Source: Ministeria vibrans ATCC 50519 (Eukaryota > Protista > Filasterea). From it: a DNA stretch of 64,000 nucleotides. The DNA is taken from positions 1-64,000 of the forward strand of contig CALSCP010000382.1 in the NCBI GenBank assembly GCA_943704425.1, given 5' to 3'. A program made the translations under genes and the position numbers. The notes below the pieces were generated by a model. It did no database searches, was not told where the DNA came from, and saw nothing but the letters and a program-made list of their open reading frames with translations. Below are positions 44,058-63,651 of this stretch, piece after piece (the first letter of the stretch is position 1; each line of letters opens with the position of its first letter).

Positions 44058-46151
44058 TTACAAATCTTGACGAAGTATGGACAAGGTGGCGGGATCGAGT
44101 GTACCGTGGCGACGGATCGCGCGGAGGGCAGCACGGCGGACAAGTCCCGCGAGGGTGCTTCCGGTGGCGCCTTGAGGCGCCTTGGAGGCAATGAGGCGCG
44201 GCGTGACGTCGTGGTGGAGCGGCAAGCGACGCGTGAGCACCTGCGCAATGTCGACGAGGTCGAGTGGAGGAGGCGCCCCAATAAGGATGTGCTGCTCGAG
44301 ACGGCCCGGTCGCAGAATGGCACTATCTAGCTGATCGGGTGGGCGATTGGTGCACGCGAGCACAAAGACCCCGGTACTGCGCTGGACACCGTCCATTTCG
44401 TTGAGGAGTTGACTGAGCGCACGCTGTTCGACCGAGGTCGCCTCGCCACTGTCGCAGAGGGCGCGCGACCCACATAGCACGTCAATCTCGTCAATGAAGA
44501 CGATACAGGGGGCAACGGCCCGTGCAGCCGCAAACAAACGGCGAACACACGCCTCGGTGTCGCCAACATAGCGCGAGAAGAGCGACGGGGCAGCGACGGG
44601 CAAAAAAGCAGCGCCGCTCTCGGCTGCCGCCGCGTGAGCCATGAGCGTCTTGCCGCAGCCCGATGGCCCGTGCAGCAGGACCCCCGACGGAGGACGCACG
44701 CCGAGACGGCTGTACGCATCGGGTCGCTGCACAGGCCACACGACCAGACGACGCAGTGTCTGCTGGACACTTGCATAGCCCCCGACATCGCTCCAGCTGT
44801 GACGCGGCCGCTCAAAGTCAAATTCAACCAGCTGTGACGGAAGCACTCGTCTGAGCGCCGACTCAACGTAGCACGGGGCGAGCACAGCTTCATTGTCGAG
44901 AAGCGCATCGAGGCGGGCACAACGCACAAGGCGGACCAAGTCGGACGCGACAAAGCCTGATGTGCGCGTGGCAGTCCACGAGACAAGTGACGACAACGAC
45001 GAACACGGTGGTGCTGATGCGTCCGTCTGCACTCCCTCGGTATCCTCAGCGGTGGCGCGTTGAAATAGAGCTGAAAGCATCGTCGCTCGCTGCTGTGTCG
45101 AAGGGGCATGCACGGTGACGGTGGCGTCCAGCGCACCACGCGCACGCAGCGTGCGCGGCAGACGCACAAGCGCATCACCGTCGCAGCTGGCAATGAGGCA
45201 CCAGCGACGCTGGAGCTGCTCGAGCGCTTGTGAAAGCAACTTGAATGCGTCGGGGGACGACTCGACGAGGCGCTCAATGTGGTGTACGAGTAGCAGTGAC
45301 ACGAGCTGTTGGTCGGCGGCGCGACTCACCCGTTTGAGGCACTGTTGCATGCTGTCGACCGAGCAGGGACCCGCCTTGAGCGTTGTCACCGATACATCCG
45401 TGTCATTGTTGCGAGACCGTGCCGCAAGGACATGCTCAATGACTGAGGATTTGCCGGCACCCGGTGGACCAGTCACAAGGATGCCACCTATCGTGAGAGA
45501 CTGGAACGAATGCTTCTCGCCCGCATCGTCCTGCTGCATTGATTGTTGTTGTCGCAGGGCAATGGCCGACTCGAGCATCCCTTGAAACTCTTCACACGGC
45601 CCCTCCAATCCGGCGCGTAATACAGGCGGCGTGGCGGCCGACAGCGACAGCGACGCAAACGACCGCGCCAAGCGTGCGTCGTCGCGCTCCGCCCGCGGCT
45701 CCACGTCGAATCGGGTGTCTTCGTTTGCAAAGGCAATGCGTACCGCAGGCCCGTCGGGGTCGCTTTGAATAGATACTACTTCGATAGGAGGGTGCGGCGG
45801 GCGCAAGATGGTGTGTCCTTGAACAAGGTGCTTGGACGCGAGAAACCGGCGCGTTGCGTCGTCGACGGGCGCCCGTACGACCACCGACGTCGCTGTGGGC
45901 ACGGTCGCGGGGTCCATGTCAAGCACGTCCACGTCCACCGTGCGGCTCGGCACGGCCCCAAGCAGCGACGGGTGGCACAGGGCGTCGGTGCTCGCCAGCA
46001 GTGCACCGCGCCATCGCGGCCACAGAACAAACCGCTGGGCAACGCAGCAGACATAGTCGCGCTCGCCGTCATCTGGCTCGCCTCCAATGCACAACCTCCA
46101 TGGTTCGGTTTCAGTTGAGGGGTCCGCAAAGAGCGAAAGTTTTAAATTCAT
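44058..46151 (-). CDS. Two-domain AAA+ ATPase, CDC48/AFG2 (SPATA5L1-like) family
   Basis: D1 GPPGAGKS with degenerate Walker B; D2 WSDVGG, GVLLHGPSGCGKT, VFIDEID, LLNEMDG, ILRPGRLE; start codon uncertain. Confidence 0.75.
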   Translation of the reverse strand: MNLKLSLFADPSTETEPWRLCIGGEPDDGERDYVCCVAQRFVLWPRWRGALLASTDALCHPSLLGAVPSRTVDVDVLDMDPATVPTATSVVVRAPVDDATRRFLASKHLVQGHTILRPPHPPIEVVSIQSDPDGPAVRIAFANEDTRFDVEPRAERDDARLARSFASLSLSAATPPVLRAGLEGPCEEFQGMLESAIALRQQQSMQQDDAGEKHSFQSLTIGGILVTGPPGAGKSSVIEHVLAARSRNNDTDVSVTTLKAGPCSVDSMQQCLKRVSRAADQQLVSLLLVHHIERLVESSPDAFKLLSQALEQLQRRWCLIASCDGDALVRLPRTLRARGALDATVTVHAPSTQQRATMLSALFQRATAEDTEGVQTDASAPPCSSLSSLVSWTATRTSGFVASDLVRLVRCARLDALLDNEAVLAPCYVESALRRVLPSQLVEFDFERPRHSWSDVGGYASVQQTLRRLVVWPVQRPDAYSRLGVRPPSGVLLHGPSGCGKTLMAHAAAAESGAAFLPVAAPSLFSRYVGDTEACVRRLFAAARAVAPCIVFIDEIDVLCGSRALCDSGEATSVEQRALSQLLNEMDGVQRSTGVFVLACTNRPPDQLDSAILRPGRLEQHILIGAPPPLDLVDIAQVLTRRLPLHHDVTPRLIASKAPQGATGSTLAGLVRRAALRAIRRHGTLDPATLSILRQDL

Positions 46152-46388
46152 ACGAATAAGATTGATCTTTTCTTTACGTAGGCTTGAACGCCTTTTGCCC
46201 TTTTTATTATAACTTAAGATCAATGGGTACTCATTGGGTAGTCACCATGTGTCGTATAAAAATGAATACTACCTGTGCGGATCTAAAAGAACCGTTCTAT
46301 CGTACAGTCTCGACAGTCTGTCGTTTTACAGACCGAAACAGTTTTAAAGTATAATGGAACTAATGGTTAATTTATATCTGTACTTCAT

Positions 46389-55526: not shown

Positions 55527-58500
55527 TTATTTAACCGAACATGTAATTGCACCGTCAACAAAGGAGAGCAGAAGGGTCTTGCCCTTCATGTTAGGCTGAA
55601 CAATCACACGTGACAGCACATTGACACAGTCTTGCTGGACCTTGCGCTTGAGCTGGCGCGCACCAAAACGTGGGTCAAACCCATCGGTGCAAATGTGCAC
55701 AAGTAGCGACTCGTCCCAGTCGAGGCTGAGCGATCGCGCCACAAACGCCTGTGTCTTGGCCACACGTCGCAGTTGAATCTCAACAATCTTCTTGAGCACC
55801 TTCCCACCCAGGGGCAGGAAGGGCACTACAGCATCAAGTCGCTCGACAAACTCGGCACGGAAAAACTTGCGCACCTGCGGCAGCAACAATTGCTCGAGTT
55901 CCTCACGATCGAGATCAACTTCCTGATCCACGTCCAACGACGACGACGACAACGACGAAGAGGAGGACGTCTTCGTCGTAGTAGTAGTTGAGGTGGTGGC
56001 CTTTTTCGCAACTGGCTTGTCGTTGTCGTCGCTATTGACACGCACCAATCGCTCAACAAGAGCCATGTCGGCACCCACCACCGAATCGACAGCAGTGCCT
56101 TCGCGAAACAACACAAAGGTGGGCACTGACGTGACACCGGCCGTGGCTGCCAGCACGTCGCATTTATCAATGTCCGCCCGGGCATACACCACATTGCCTA
56201 GCTGAGACTCGGCAAGTGCATCAAACGCAGGCGCAACACGCTCACATGGCCCACACCACGACGCACAAAAGTCAACAAGCATCAGACGCGAGCCGGCCTG
56301 ACGTGCACACTCGCGAAAGTCATCCAACGAGTGGATCACCCGCACCGTCTCTTTCACAGCCTTCTTGTCCTTGGAACTGCCGCTCTTCTTCGACGCACTC
56401 GCACCACGACCACCGCCGGCAGCGGATGCGCTGGCAAACTTGGACGTGTCCTTGAGTAGCGCGTCCATGGAGCTCTTGGCGGCACGACGATGGCGCCCTT
56501 CCTCAATGCGCTTGTACAGCACATCCGCACCTAGATTGGACGTCATGAAGAAGATGCCGTTGCGACAGTTGACCCGTCGCCCCGTCGCATCCGACACGTG
56601 ACCTATCACAAAAAACAATGAATACAAGTCCAACAACACCATTGATGCGCTGCAGCGCAACCAAAGTCATTCGTACCTTCATCAAAGACCTGCAAGAGAA
56701 TATCAAAAACACGCGGGTGGGCCTTCTCCACTTCGTCGAAAAGCACCGCCGAGTACGCTCGCTTGCGTAGCGCCTCTGTCAGCTGGCCACCGTCGTCAGA
56801 GCCCACATAACCCGGAGGACTAAACACAGGGAAATTTATAAAGAGTACAAAAACAAAAAAAAGTAATATTTGTTACCTTCCAATCATACGCGAGATACTC
56901 TGTTGCTCTTGATACTCACTCATGTCCAGCCGGATAAACGCCTGATCCGTGTCAAACAGCTGCTCCGCCACTGCCTTGACCAGCTGTACACAACCAAGCA
57001 CAAGCACAACAGGTAAAAATAAAGCAAAACAATCATATTAATAATTACTACGTTCGTCTTATATTATACTATTTAAATTATCACTATACCTCGGTCTTTC
57101 CAACGCCAGTGGGACCAACCAGCAAGAAGGAGCCAATGGGACGGTCGGGGTCGCCGAGGCCACAACGGTTGCGGCGGATTGCATCGACGACGGTCTGAAC
57201 GGCAAAAGGTTGGCCCACAACACGCTGCTCGAGGACATCGCCCAGACTCGCAAGACGCTCTAGATCACTCTGCTGCATCTTATTGAGCGGAATTTTGGCG
57301 CGACGCGACACCTCGGCAGCCACATCATCCTCATCGACCTCCGTCTTGCCGTCAATCTCAGCCTTACTCGCCGCCTTGCCCAGTACGTCAATCGCCTTGT
57401 CAGGTAGACGAAGCTCCGTCATATAGCGCGATGTAAGCTCACACGCTGCCAGAATGGCGCCCTGCGTGAAGGAAACGCCATGGCGACGCTGAAAGTGCTC
57501 GCGACGCGCCACCAGAATGTCCACCGTCATGGCCACACTGGGCTCCTCAACAATCACCTCTGCAAACCGCCGCACCATCGCCGCGTCCTTCTCGATATTC
57601 TTCTTGAACTCCTTGTGCGTCGTCGCACCAATCACTCGGAACTCCCCTCGCGACAGCGCGGGCCTGAACAAGTATAGAAAAATAAGTTAAAAAGAAAAAA
57701 AGGAAAAAAAAGGAAAAAAAAAAAGACAATTCAAAATGACGTACTTGAGAATGTTTCCGGCGTCCATGGAGCCCCCACCAGCACCCGCGCCCATCATGGT
57801 GTGCATCTCGTCCAAGAACAAAATGTCACCGTCGCTCTCGCTCATCTCCGCCACAATCTTCTTCATGCGCTCCTCAAACTGTCCGCGATACTGCGTGCCC
57901 GCCACGACTGAACTCATGTCCAGACTGTACACTCGCTTGTGTCGTAGGAACTCAGGCACACGCGCCTGTACAATCCGTACCGCCAGCCCTTCCACCACAT
58001 TCGTCTTGCCAACACCCTACACGGAAACAAAATAAACCGTATTAAATTTCCAAGTGAAGTCGTTGTCTGTTTTTTTATTATTATTAAACGTACCGCCTCA
58101 CCAAGAAGAATGACATTGCTCTTGCCGGCGCGATTAAGCGTCTCAATGATCATCTGCAGCTCAGCGTCGCGTCCAATGGCGTCGTGAATTTTGCTGTCGC
58201 GCGCCAGTTCCGTCAGGTCACGTCCGTGTTCCTTCATCATCTTCATGCGATCGTTTCCCTTGGGCTTCCACGCACCGCTATCCTTGATCGTTTTCTTCAC
58301 CGCTTCATTCAGGGTGACTCCATCAATCGCAAGCGCAGTCAAACTGCCGCCGCCGCCCGACACTGCTGCTGCAGCTCCAATCACACTCGTTGACGCGTCC
58401 TTGTTGTCACCGTCCACTGCACGACCACTCACCGACTGCATGGCGCTCGAGACGGCACTGCGAATCTCATCCGAGGTTAACTTGCGGCTGGCAATGTCGT

Positions 58501-61500
58501 CACCAAGCGCATCGTCCATGTCCGCGCACTCACACGCGAGTCGCTCGAGTTCCTCTTGAAGTCCCTTGAGGTTGAACGAACGATAGTACTGGCCGCGCAG
58601 TGTCGCCAGCGAGCCCTTAAACTCGGCCGTTTTGCGTCGGTCATCCTTGGGCGGATCGAGTTTGACCGTGGCAAACGCTTCGCGCAATCGCTCCACCGGC
58701 GTCTTGTCCTTCTTTCCCTTGCCAAAGCCTCCGCATCCTGAGTCTGCCTCGTCCTCGACAACCTCATCAGGGTACACCAATGAGAAGACAGCCATGGTAC
58801 GCGGTGATTTGCGCATCTGCGTGCGAAACGCATCGAAGAGCTCCTTCGACTTGAAGAGCGTCTCCTCAGCCGCCTCAACATAGATGATGACGGGTTGTGC
58901 ACGGCCAATGCGCTGCCGAAAAACCGACTCAAGCAGCGTCACATACTTGCTAGGCTCACTCTTAAACAGATCGGCCACCAACACAATGGTCTGTGCGCCA
59001 AAGCGGTTGGCCAGTCCCTGGCCAACCGCACGATGGTACAAGTGCGTGCCGTCGTCGGGCGGGCCCTCCAGCAGCAGGAATCGGTCGTACGTCTGCATGC
59101 GCTCCGAGTGTTCACTCACCAAGAACAGCGAACCGGTTCCTGTGAATCAAAGAAAAAGAGAGAGGAAAGAGAGGAAAGAGAGGAAAGAGAGGAAAGAGAG
59201 GAAAGAGAGGAAAGAGAGAGTGATAAAAAGTTAAAAAAAAACATAATAATAATAATAATAAAAATAATAAAAATAATAATAATAATAATACCAATAAGAG
59301 TGTTGTGAGACTCGGCGGAAATGTAGTAGGGAAAGTCGGGACCAAGGGTGATGGTTTCTGCCTCGTCGAGAAGCGAGCTCCACCACTCGTGCTGCTTCTC
59401 GCTTGCTTCGCGGTCAAGAGCCTCCTGCACGCGTTCCATCACTTGCTTGAGCGCACTCGTCGTCAGGACGATCTTGTTGTTGTCGGTGTCGCAATCTGAA
59501 CCACTGGCACCCTCGGGTTGCACGGGGGTCGACGAGGCCGATACCACAGCAGTACCGACAGCGGAGGCGGCGGTCGTAGTCGTAAGTGTCGAAGAGTCAC
59601 TGTTGAGATCACCATGGATGGCAGCGGCCACAGCAGCAACCGCCGCTTGTTCGCTATCCACCTGACTCATGGCGGACTCTTGAAGGCGAACAGTGGTGCG
59701 GATGATTTCGGGAAGTCGCGAGGCAAAGCGCGTGTCGCAGGCCATTCGATTGACGAGCTCGTCCTCAGTGGCGTGCTCCTCGATAATCATGTGATGGGAC
59801 AGAGCCAAGCGCAACTGGACGCGTGCAACTCGTTTGTCCCATATCTTAGCATCGGCCACCATGCGATCGCTCCACGCCGCAAACGCGCTCACGTTCACAT
59901 CGGCTGAGGGTGCGGTGAGCTTGAGCTTGCGACAGGCGGCCGTCGACGAGTCGCCCGCATCCTCGTCTTCCGACACCTCTTCCTCCTCAGCCTGACCAAA
60001 CATGCCAAAGGGACGTCCACGATTACGCATTTTGCCTTTGCCACGACGCACATTTCGACGTCCACCAAACGCCCCGTCGTCGTCGTTGTCGTCGTCGCTC
60101 TTGGACTCGTCCGAGACAGTCGACGAGAAGACAATGGGAACGCCGGTGGGAAGGGTCGCCCAGGCACGCAGCGCGTCGATGTAGCCCTTGAAAGTCGATG
60201 CGTTCTCGTGGAGTTGAGGCACATGGACAACACATGGCGCAATCTCATGATCGTTGAGCACCTCACGGAGTGCATTGAACACGGTGCGTTCGGGACTCGA
60301 TGTCCTCGGCTTCGTCTCCTGCTGCTGGTTGAACATGCCGTTGTTGCTGGAGATGCACTCGGGGCGAACACGGCTGCGCGGACGAATGCCCGGCAAGGTG
60401 AGATTGTAGGTACCGTCGTCGTTGACCTTAGACACGCTCCCCGACATGCCGTCTGTAGTGCGGATCTGGTCGCCGACGGCAAAGGCGTTGCGGCCCTTAA
60501 AGCCAGGCTTGACAAGCGCAAGCAGTTCGGCAATATTGAGACGGAGAAGACGACGGGTGCTTCGCTGGGCGGCAATGGCATCGACAATCTTCTCGTGGCA
60601 CAGAGCTGAGCCTACGGGTCCCTCAAGGCGCAGTACGGCAACGTCAAAGCCGGCAAGATGTTGAAAGCGATCTTGTGTGGTCGTTGCGGTGTCGTCGGTG
60701 GAGTCGCTATTTTTCTTAGACAAGCCTTGCAAGCATGCCGTAGTCCACGCATCAAGCTGATTCGCCAGCTCGGCCTTGATGGGGTAGGCAAACGTAGAGT
60801 CGCGAAGCACAGCCGATATGAGTGCACTGCTGTCCTCCTTGGAAGTGGCGTCGTCGCTGTCGTCGTCCGATGACACGACGTCGGTGATGGCCGCGCGAAT
60901 GACCTTGACAAGACGATTGTGCAGTTCCTTCTTGGAGCTTGCCACACTGGTGCTGGTACTTGAGGATCCCAGAGAATCGCGCAACAGCTCGGCATCAAGC
61001 AGGAGATTGCCTTCGTCGTCGTACTCGACTGCGTCCTTGTCGCGCTCGTGCTGGCTGCTCAAGGCCATATTGAGAACGCGACGGAGCTCGTGCACCGACA
61101 GCTTCTTGTGGGTGATGCAAAATGGAAGCGGTGCATCATGCTCAGCATCATCGTCATTGCTGTGCGTCACCGCGCAGGGCTTAAGAGCCACCTTGGTCAA
61201 CATAAGAATGTCACGCAAACGACGGCAGTTACCCACGCGTTGCATGCGACGCTTCTCCTCTTCGCAAAAGCTCTTCCACGCGCGCTGATCCTCCTTCTTC
61301 TTGGCCGCCAGCACCGTTACGATGTCTGCCAGTGGCTCTACGGACGTGTCTACACTGGACGAGACGGGTTCCTCGGCCTTTTTCTGATCCGAGCCCTCTT
61401 CGTCGCTGTGGTCGATGCTCTTCCCATCGCCCTTGTCATCGCTCTTGTCCCCCTCTGCTTCGTCTTTCTCTTTCTGCTTCTTCTTCTCCTCCTCCTCGTT

Positions 61501-63651
61501 GTCGTCCTTCTTCTCGGTCGGTGCTGCACCAAAACTGAATCCAGAAGACACGGAAGCGCTAGGTGCTCCAAAACCGCCGCCACTCGTGCTTGATGCTGGT
61601 GTACCAAACATTGATGGAGCCCCGAATCCGCCACCTCCAGCACTGCCAAACGGACTGGGTTTGGCCGCACCAAAAGTGCCGTTCATGGAGTTGTTGCTGC
61701 TGGGTGCGCCAAAGGAAGATGTACCGGCATCAACACTAGAAGTGCCTGAGAGCGTCTTGAGCAGCGATGTAACCCATGACACACTGGAAAGAGTGTGTGA
61801 CGCAAACGGAATGCACATGTTGCGCGCATTGAGCTGCTCGCCGAGTGTGGTGCGGAAGCCGTCGTGGCGGAGGAGTGCCGTAAAGGTTGGTGGTAGGTAA
61901 AGCACAAAGACGTGTTTGTCGACAATGTCGGAGTTGTTCTGAAGCGACAGATCGACGGAGCGCATGAGGGCACGGGCACACGCACGCACATACTTGTCGT
62001 CGGCATTGGCCGAGCCCAGTCCCTCAGTCTCGGCCTTGTCAGGTGCCGTCGCAGCGCCACTGACGCCTGCGTCGTCGTCCGAGTCGTCCGAGTCACTGTC
62101 TTCGTCGTCGTCGTCGTCGTTGTTGTTGCCCAGCATGCCGAATCCACCAGCATTGTTGTTCTTTTTGCCCTTCTTTTTGTTTGCCATCGTTCCAAAGCCA
62201 CCTCCACCACCAAATGGAGCGCCAAAGGAAAACGCGTTATTGTTGTTATTATTGTTGTCGTTGTCATTGCTGTTGTCAGTGTCTGCGGCCGTCGAGTTGT
62301 CCGCCACGGCGTCTTCGGCGTTGGTAGCGCGCGCGAGACGACGTCGACGCGCCGACTTGAGGACCTTTGCGTCGAGTGTGCCCTCGAGCAGTGAAAAGAG
62401 AGTCTCGGATGCAGTGGACGCGACAGTGACAAAGGCAGCGTGAGCATGGGTGGCGGCTGCCTCGGCGAGGGAACAAAGATATACGTCGGCGTAGGCGGGT
62501 CCCTTGAGCACGCACACGCGTGGGTTTTTGACTGTGAGATCGCTAAATTGGCGCGCCAAGTGACGACCGTGCGCCGTGGTGCGGTACAGCGTCACATCAC
62601 TCACAAAGGTGGAGATTTGCTCGACAACCTTGTCCGAGGGAGCTGATGGAGTGAGTTTGGCAAAGACGGCGGTAGGTTTACTCGTGAGCGTGATGGCGTG
62701 AGACTCACCAAGCGCGTCGACGACCTTTTGTTCAAAGTCTTCTGTGTCCGACGCAGGCCTGGCGCCCGTTGACGAGGGGGTGAGCGAAGAAGCATCCGAT
62801 GCTGTTGCGAGTGAGGTCGACAGTGGGGCGTCGTCAGGGATCGCCTGGCTTGACACGACGACCACTTCGGGCGTTGGAGCTGCGCTCGCAGCTTTAAAAA
62901 CGTTTGCAGCGGCAACGGCGGCGTCGCTATCGGCCTGAATATGGTTGATACTGGCCATATCGAGGGCAGTGGCGGTAGTGTCGGTGATTGCGGCGGCGGC
63001 CATATCCAAAGGATTGGCTGACACTTGACGGACAGCCGGCGAGTTGGACTGAGACGCGATTGCGGCGGCGGCCATATCCAAAGGATTGGCTGACACTTGA
63101 CGGACAGCCGGCGAGTTGGACTGAGACGCGGTTGCGGCGGCGGCCACTTTGGCGGCCATCGAGATGGACGTGGGGCGTTTGCGCAGGCCGTCCTTTTCGC
63201 CAGGAGTCTCAAGCAGATGGAACTCGGCGACGTCGACGGACGGTGGTGCGAAGTGCTTGGCTTTCAGCAGAGGCTCCTGGCGTTTGGCGACGCGCCAGTA
63301 CTCGCCGTTGATCAGACGCAGGAAGGCAAACGAGACTGGCACATCCTCTTCGTCCATCTGCTCGGCGAGGCGAGTGCGCACTTCGAGAAGAGTGTCCTGC
63401 AAACGTTTGCCAAACGCGATAAAAAAAAAACATTTTTTTTTTCGGGTGTCAAGCAAGAAAAAGGGGGAAAGAAAATGGCGATCTACCTGAGCCATGCATC
63501 GAACAAAGGCAATGTTGGCGTTGGCGACCTTGAGGACAGTCTCAGCGGGGGCGGCACGTCCAGGAAATTGGGCGGCCGGCACAATGTGAACCTTGAAGTC
63601 GCTGAGTTGCTCGCTCAGCTGTCTCTGCAGCGACGTGGGTCGGTTCGACAT
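55527..63651 (-). CDS. Giant Clp/Hsp100 AAA+ protein (~2,500 aa): SPATA1-like N-domain, three degenerate AAA modules, ClpA-like NBD1-NBD2 with inserted thioredoxin
   Basis: NBD1: IGRDAE, GEA|[45 protein letters not shown]2: [51 protein letters not shown] thioredoxin. Upstream ORF 59116..63651 joins in frame through GT-AG intron 59140-59291. Confidence 0.8.
59157..59220. repeat. Intronic 9-bp tandem repeat (GAGAGGAAA)n
   Basis: About six direct copies. Confidence 0.9.
62987..63143. repeat. 72-bp coding tandem duplication ([24 protein letters not shown] x2)
   Basis: Two near-identical in-frame copies. Confidence 0.9.

Follow-up and report, generated by a model that had tools for sequence, protein, structure and literature searches.

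A thioredoxin domain inserted into the second nucleotide-binding domain of a two-ring Hsp100 ATPase, at the predicted equivalent of the ClpP-docking loop

In the E. coli unfoldase ClpA, which works as ClpAP, the IGL loop region lies at the base of the second ring domain (D2) and contacts ClpP (10.1101/820209). ClpB and Hsp104 are without this tripeptide, and grafting of the ClpA loop into them, as in the engineered proteins BAP and HAP, leads to ClpP docking (PMC5540906). Two other AAA+ unfoldases have been found paired with a thioredoxin. TXNL1 is located near the motor entrance of the 26S proteasome, where it “more likely” reduces substrates during unfolding (PMC12700817), and for TRX2, which occurs with HSP101 in the Plasmodium translocon PTEX, a role in clearing disulfides that obstruct export was proposed (PMC7355975). 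The need for a dedicated reductase at AAA+ unfoldases, and the place that it would occupy, are open questions for both the proteasome and the malaria translocon. Here we describe a gene on a stretch of 64,000 nucleotides from Ministeria vibrans ATCC 50519, a marine single-celled eukaryote (assembly GCA_943704425.1, contig CALSCP010000382.1, positions 1 to 64,000 of the forward strand; hereafter, the window), which encodes a two-ring Hsp100 motor with a thioredoxin domain inside its second nucleotide-binding domain (NBD2). The link between thioredoxin and unfoldase is here covalent and would be stoichiometric, at the site where other Clp ATPases pass substrate to a protease.

The host gene is a multi-exon gene on the minus strand, and the thioredoxin lies in its last exon, exon F (Table 1). 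Exons were searched singly, never as a joined spliced protein, and the NCBIfam whole-protein cut-offs are therefore inapplicable. In exon F (357 amino acids, window 55530-56600, minus strand), Pfam matched AAA_2 at residues 2-50, Thioredoxin (PF00085) at residues 93-179, with an E value of 4.1e-20 and a score of 72 bits (cut-off, 23.5), and ClpB_D2-small at residues 265-339. The order along the exon is AAA_2 with the sensor-1 strand MTSNLG, a linker, the thioredoxin, a second linker, the arginine-finger helix and D2-small. Similarly, the NCBIfam thioredoxin model TIGR01068 was matched at 7e-21, flanked by two stretches of the ClpB model, and a PDB sequence search with exon F returned free thioredoxins (E 5e-22, ~40% identity over the whole domain) and ClpB chains (2e-17, residues 229-346). 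The exon has its acceptor AG at 56604-56603 and its stop codon at 55529-55527, and its frame is open throughout and contains nothing AT-rich that resembles an intron. A preliminary description of the window had reported a complete thioredoxin with its active-site motif within a single exon, with MTSNLG at 56546..56529 and WCGPC at 56258..56244. Both motifs were read there on the minus strand, and the single open frame (56602..55527), the Pfam match and the predicted fold described below agree with that report.

E. coli ClpA and ClpB were used as alignment references for the insertion point. Exon F residues 2-34 aligned with ClpB 699-731, and residues from 229 onwards with ClpB from 731 onwards. 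The insert comprises exon F residues 35-228 (194 amino acids, window 56498..55917) and falls between ClpB 731 and 732. In the ClpA alignment, it takes the place of the tip of the MTTNAG-to-FTPEF segment, which holds the IGL tripeptide. The insertion site thus lies where ClpA has the tip of its IGL helix-loop-helix, at the D2 base; this agrees with the placement in the preliminary description, and homology would put the site on the exit side of the ring. No (I/L/V)G(F/L) ClpP-docking tripeptide was found in the D2 helix-loop-helix in the ClpA and ClpB alignments; the thioredoxin insert occupies its site. Judged from its sequence, the motor would be unable to dock ClpP. The same genome contains one ClpP locus, and a ClpX-like locus is present on another contig. 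In BAP and HAP, the same loop site accepts a graft that works at the exit face (PMC5540906); in contrast to those proteins, the graft described here arose naturally and consists of an enzyme instead of a docking peptide. The site would thus be a natural insertion hot-spot that holds a whole enzyme, which is useful for the engineering of Hsp100 machines.

An exhaustive protein search returned P0001, a product of 401 amino acids that starts in exon E and runs into exon F. Its environmental contig (L001, from Joint Genome Institute [JGI] sample 3300040761) matched the window at 56821-56675 with 100% identity and at 56604-55523 with 99.8% identity. This pattern indicates that the intron 56676-56603 was precisely removed and that the thioredoxin is unbroken to the stop codon, and it supports the continuity of the exon. 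The contig shows two mismatches to the window, one of which changes Val to Leu, and it therefore comes from another sample or strain. At 56597-56595, near the start of exon F, the window reads GHVSD, and both L001 and a relative species read GHLSD, a strain-level Val/Leu polymorphism. For the segment 55400-57700, runs X1-X5 contained 0.80-0.82 of the sampled words, with ~0.84 calculated for the mature mRNA; runs X19/X20 contained 1.00, and a polyA RNA-seq run 0.41.

A second occurrence of the fusion was found in another species. P0088, on contig L002 of assembly GCA_025491055.1, has the same junction from NBD2 to thioredoxin and the same WCGPC, with a shorter linker. In L002 (361-560 and 899-1071), the introns lie inside Walker B (FDEV|EKAH) and directly after WCGPCTK, positions that differ from those in the window, and this turnover of introns between the two lineages indicates deep divergence. 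Synonymous sites were saturated between the two species (proportion of synonymous differences, pS, 0.6-0.74). The ratio of nonsynonymous to synonymous substitution rates (dN/dS) was 0.11 for the Clp part, 0.15 for the thioredoxin part, an estimate from 32 codons only, and 0.32 for the linker. The relative has an N-side tether shorter by ~28 residues (in the linker, 48 aligned gap columns versus 20), and the tethers are only 31% identical over 29 aligned codons. This pattern, over a saturated divergence, indicates that the domain has been kept by selection, while the tethers drift. It is hardly credible that the fusion is an artefact, whether an assembly chimera, a mis-join or a decaying pseudogene: an independent spliced contig reads through the insert, a second genome carries the orthologous insertion, the open frame is under purifying selection and runs X19/X20 hold all of the sampled words. 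The insertion is confirmed as genuine, expressed and lineage-restricted, far beyond chance.

The thioredoxin inside a Clp ATPase is a very rare architecture, in which known domains stand in a new arrangement. Among the best 150 of 1.84 billion representatives, the other high scorers were multi-thioredoxin proteins or ordinary Clp proteins, and word-indexed searches through 5.8 billion clusters yielded P0160 as the sole addition to P0001 and P0088. As a cluster-search query, P0088 returned only itself, and P0001 only ordinary Clp fragments and P0160. With exon C as the query, no ortholog exceeded 60% identity in partial alignments or 53% when the whole exon was aligned. When 269 fetched proteins were searched with phmmer, the Clp and thioredoxin parts occurred together only in P0001, P0088 and P0160. 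A DNA pattern for the junction peptide gave 0 matches in JGI metagenome contigs, and the alignment of P0001 and P0088 matched 39 loci in JGI metagenomes, none of which, with full-length matches of ~200 codons, had an insertion between the Clp parts. The ESM Atlas gave generic Clp clusters only (score 0.75), and a literature search for a fusion of thioredoxin and ClpB returned nothing relevant.

P0160 was examined as a further fusion and rejected. In this bacterial ClpB, a truncated thioredoxin follows at the C terminus and is not inserted, and the Walker A stretch consists of Ser/Arg-rich sequence unrelated to that motif, such as a frameshift would produce. P0160 is encoded at L051:3001-4650 on a bacterial contig, in a grpE-dnaJ-MerR-clpB neighbourhood; rather than representing a true fusion, the gene call probably runs on into an adjacent trx gene.

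The motor that carries the insert has the class I Clp/Hsp100 domain set, which Pfam found exon by exon: AAA, AAA_lid_9, AAA_2 and ClpB_D2-small. In blastp comparisons with ClpA and ClpB, the first nucleotide-binding domain (NBD1) showed Walker A (GEAGVGKT, split by an intron), Walker B (FLDEMH), the pore loop QYRG and RRF, and NBD2 has kept Walker A and B, the pore loop GYVG, the sensor-1 Asn, ERLD and GAR. Pore-loop tyrosines are therefore present in both rings, in QYRG of exon B and GYVG of exon E; the latter exon is 70% identical to ClpB 650-696 and is also contained in the spliced contig L001. With Walker A and B, the pore-loop Tyr, the Arg fingers and the sensor motifs preserved in each, both ATPase rings look catalytically intact. 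Exon C is collinear with ClpA 309-503 (43% identity), whereas its alignment to ClpB splits in two and skips ~410-520; the ClpB model was matched on this exon at positions 293-398 and 525-612 only, and no M-domain was found between them. Since the M-domain (ClpB ~410-520) is missing, Hsp70-coupled disaggregation in the manner of ClpB is not expected.

In architecture, the protein is ClpA-like: with E. coli ClpA, a class I Hsp100, it shares two AAA+ rings without an M-domain, a collinear NBD1-NBD2 linker and a functional element in the helix-loop-helix after the D2 sensor-1. In contrast to ClpA, it has no IGL and no Clp_N (Pfam gave no match to that domain in exon A or in the upstream frame described below), a tether-thioredoxin-tether of 194 residues takes the place of the loop, its NBD2 is nearer to ClpB in sequence, and a eukaryotic protein of very large size appears to contain the motor. 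In sequence, the NCBIfam ClpB model TIGR03346 matched best overall. The protein is a mosaic: its architecture resembles that of ClpA and its sequence that of ClpB, with an NBD2 nearest to bacterial ClpB fragments. One of the closest NBD2 clusters includes P0157, which is labelled Verrucomicrobiota. Three Clp relatives, P0152, P0097 and P0143, have tandem AAA_2-type modules instead of NBD1 and NBD2, as seen in Pfam tables and in the alignment.

When the full ClpB model was run against the 29.7-Mb assembly, all strong matches fell in this gene, and C1890 reached no more than 25 bits. Canonical ClpB, Hsp104 and Hsp78 may all be absent from the organism, and this gene may be its sole two-ring Hsp100, being the only one detected in the assembly. 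As such, it may carry the Hsp100-type function of the organism in an unusual form.

The structure of the inserted domain was predicted with AlphaFold2 on P0001, a natural partial product, from an alignment of 89 rows. The thioredoxin (P0001 residues 130-238) had a predicted local distance difference test (pLDDT) score of 95-97 and the strand-helix pattern typical of thioredoxin. Foldseek aligned the model to human Trx1 over 103-105 of its 105 residues, with a target-normalised template modelling (TM) score of 0.92-0.93 and a root-mean-square deviation of 1.0-1.2 A; the catalytic domain of TXNL1 (1gh2) was also among the fold matches. The model thus predicts a full thioredoxin fold, with all strands and helices. 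Along with the catalytic Cys pair, the sequence shows LVDF with the buried Asp, VPTF with the cis-Pro and ERVAP with the Pro that follows CGPC; WCGPC and LVDF are retained in P0088. WCGPC is the motif of reducing thioredoxins, not of the oxidising PDI or DsbA types. Human Trx1 and plant or algal Trx h are similar to the insert in sequence (~36-40% identity), in WCGPC and in the full fold; they are free 12-kDa proteins, whereas the insert is an internal domain of an AAA+ module. The insert is a complete cytosolic-type (Trx1/h-type) thioredoxin and is apparently redox-active.

In the same model, the stretches on both sides of the thioredoxin (P0001 residues 106-123 and 241-274) had pLDDT below 50, and the C-side tether reached 30-48. 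The helix after MTSNLG runs to about P0001 residue 103, which may be an over-prediction; the start of the N-side tether may prolong the preceding helix. With tethers of this length (~51 and 34 residues, pLDDT below 50), the thioredoxin would not be fixed at the exit.

These properties are consistent with several roles of the domain. We tentatively propose, at a little less than an even chance, that the tethered thioredoxin acts in cis as a disulfide reductase, or as a reductase plus holdase, on threaded clients at the exit face of the motor. In the hexamer, six thioredoxins would hang on flexible tethers from the C-terminal (exit) face, their number and placement following from homology to ClpA and ClpB hexamers. 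They would reduce the disulfides of clients threaded by the motor, and perhaps also hold these clients, and they would in turn be recycled by the thioredoxin reductase of the cell. Chains leaving the motor would then be unfolded and fully reduced, and would not be fed to a protease. Six thioredoxins that ring the exit and reduce the emerging chain “instead of proteolysis” had already been suggested in the preliminary description. That suggestion is partly supported: the alignments bear out the site and the geometry, and the reductive chemistry is a proposal, with the replacement of proteolysis put forward on the same footing.

One alternative is that the thioredoxin fold serves as a handle on the exit face for a partner, which it would bind by affinity or through a mixed disulfide; the partner might be a peroxiredoxin, a methionine sulfoxide reductase, a pore or another ring, for example. 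ClpA, ClpC and ClpX naturally dock their partners at this site (PMC5540906; 10.1101/820209), and thioredoxin is known as a stable subunit or ligand, with solved complexes with NLRP1, SlrP and Mxr1 in the Foldseek listing. However, no candidate partner is known, and a purely structural role needs neither WCGPC nor the buried Asp nor the cis-Pro, yet these have been kept in both species. We regard this alternative as decidedly unlikely. The same conservation of the catalytic motif speaks against a holdase independent of redox chemistry, in which six thioredoxin domains would bind the emerging chain and block its re-aggregation without any chemistry. TXNL1 does have a chaperone activity that is independent of ATP and redox state (PMC10570131), but a holdase role is compatible with a reductase and may be an extra function only; as the sole explanation we find it improbable.

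A built-in redox switch, in which the thioredoxin would relay the redox state to cysteines of the motor, in NBD2 or the giant N-terminal region, and so gate ATPase activity or assembly, also seems unlikely, although the location of the insert is suggestive. It adjoins the arginine-finger helix and the sensor-1 strand, where movement could affect the ATPase, and another AAA+ protein, Rubisco activase, is under thioredoxin regulation. Furthermore, the published work on TXNL1 does not exclude that it reduces cysteines of the machine itself (PMC12700817). However, long disordered tethers fit a roaming enzyme better than an allosteric element, and no lineage-specific cysteine pair was identified in the motor. 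The Cys in VNC(R/K)N also occurs in bacterial relatives, and P0088 has not conserved the Cys that precedes WCGPC.

The proposed reduction of clients in cis faces difficulties of its own. Its main weakness is the anchoring of the thioredoxin on the exit side: any disulfide that prevents unfolding has to be cleaved at the entrance, near which TXNL1 is found. The protein shows no visible signal peptide at its predicted start and is therefore likely cytosolic or nuclear, where stable disulfides are scarce. In addition, only two species are known to have the fusion, and the selection estimate for the thioredoxin comes from 32 codons. These points weigh against a cis reductase. On the other hand, the proteasome is able to thread disulfide-linked unstructured chains (PMC12700817), and reduction after passage is therefore conceivable; the tethers may also let the thioredoxin reach round the ring. 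We consider it possible, but rather doubtful, that the protein is a self-contained unfoldase-reductase, in which the Hsp100 motor threads disulfide-locked or oxidatively cross-linked proteins and the six thioredoxins reduce them at the channel exit. If so, it would represent a new class of machines that repair oxidised proteins, and a natural “Rosetta stone” fusion backing TXNL1 at the proteasome and TRX2 in PTEX as co-translocational reductases.

By analogy with these two systems, the gene reads as a covalent version of a pairing of unfoldase and thioredoxin that is otherwise seen in trans. At the 26S proteasome, too, a redox-active thioredoxin is flexibly linked to an AAA+ unfoldase and is proposed to reduce substrates (PMC12700817). 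TXNL1, however, is a separate protein that binds reversibly, its PITH domain docking on Rpn11 at the entrance, while the thioredoxin described here is covalently attached and, by homology, would be anchored on the exit face with six copies per ring. PTEX likewise pairs a ClpB-type Hsp100, HSP101, with a thioredoxin (PMC7355975), but TRX2 is separate and sub-stoichiometric with an unresolved position, and PTEX is a secreted membrane translocon; no homology is implied beyond the shared families. With motor and thioredoxin in one polypeptide, CxxC and Walker B mutants would offer a simple system for studying how threading is coupled to disulfide reduction.

Table 1. Exons of the Clp part of the gene and features of its last exon (window coordinates)
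Feature	Position	Strand	Remarks
MTSNLG, NBD2 sensor-1 strand directly before the insert	56529..56546	-	Aligns to ClpB MTSNLG and ClpA MTTNAG
N-side tether, exon F residues 35-85	56346..56498	-	Basic, Ser/Ala/Gly-rich; without ClpA/ClpB counterpart
Thioredoxin domain, exon F residues 86-194	56019..56345	-	Pfam, PDB, AlphaFold2, Foldseek
WCGPC active-site motif	56244..56258	-	Read in exon F; kept in P0088
C-side tether, exon F residues 195-228	55917..56018	-	Thr/Ser run, then acidic stretch; without ClpA/ClpB counterpart
NBD2 resumption: helix before FRAEF, then arginine-finger motif ERLD	55809..55916	-	blastp: exon F residue 229 on aligns with ClpB 731 on
D2-small (lid) domain with sensor-2 GAR motif	55584..55808	-	PF10431
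Exon A (3' part)	58094..59122	-	Degenerate AAA-like stretch and lead-in to NBD1; exon ends at 58094
Exon B	57745..58016	-	NBD1 Walker A lysine (GVGKT), pore-loop Tyr (QYRGQFEER), Walker B (FLDEMH)
Exon C	57090..57663	-	NBD1 end, NBD1 lid, short ClpA-type linker (without M-domain), NBD2 Walker A (GPTGVGKTE)
Exon D	56877..56983	-	NBD2 past Walker A (Pfam, ClpB/ClpA alignments)
Exon E	56677..56819	-	NBD2 pore loop GYVG and Walker B (FDEVEKAH); Pfam AAA_2 1e-17
Exon F (last)	55527..56602	-	NBD2 large-domain end, insert, D2-small; in frame from 56600

The exon borders were read directly in the window, and the introns are short and AT-rich with GT-AG ends. In exon A, positions 119-203 of the ClpB model were matched at 58094-58348. 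A giant reading frame further upstream (59332..63651, ~1440 amino acids), which is rich in low-complexity sequence and FG-type repeats, seems to belong to the same gene as the Clp part; Pfam gave no match at E 0.05 in this frame. The intron upstream of exon A (~59125-59330) contains a simple repeat at 59153-59222, which reads KERKE in one frame. At a distance of 9 kb from the Clp gene, a single-exon frame of 721 amino acids on the minus strand (44058-46223) encodes a protein with two AAA modules, the second of which is a strong match to PF00004 (1e-44) and is accompanied by AAA_lid_3. This protein is an ATPase of the Cdc48/NVL/AFG2 type.

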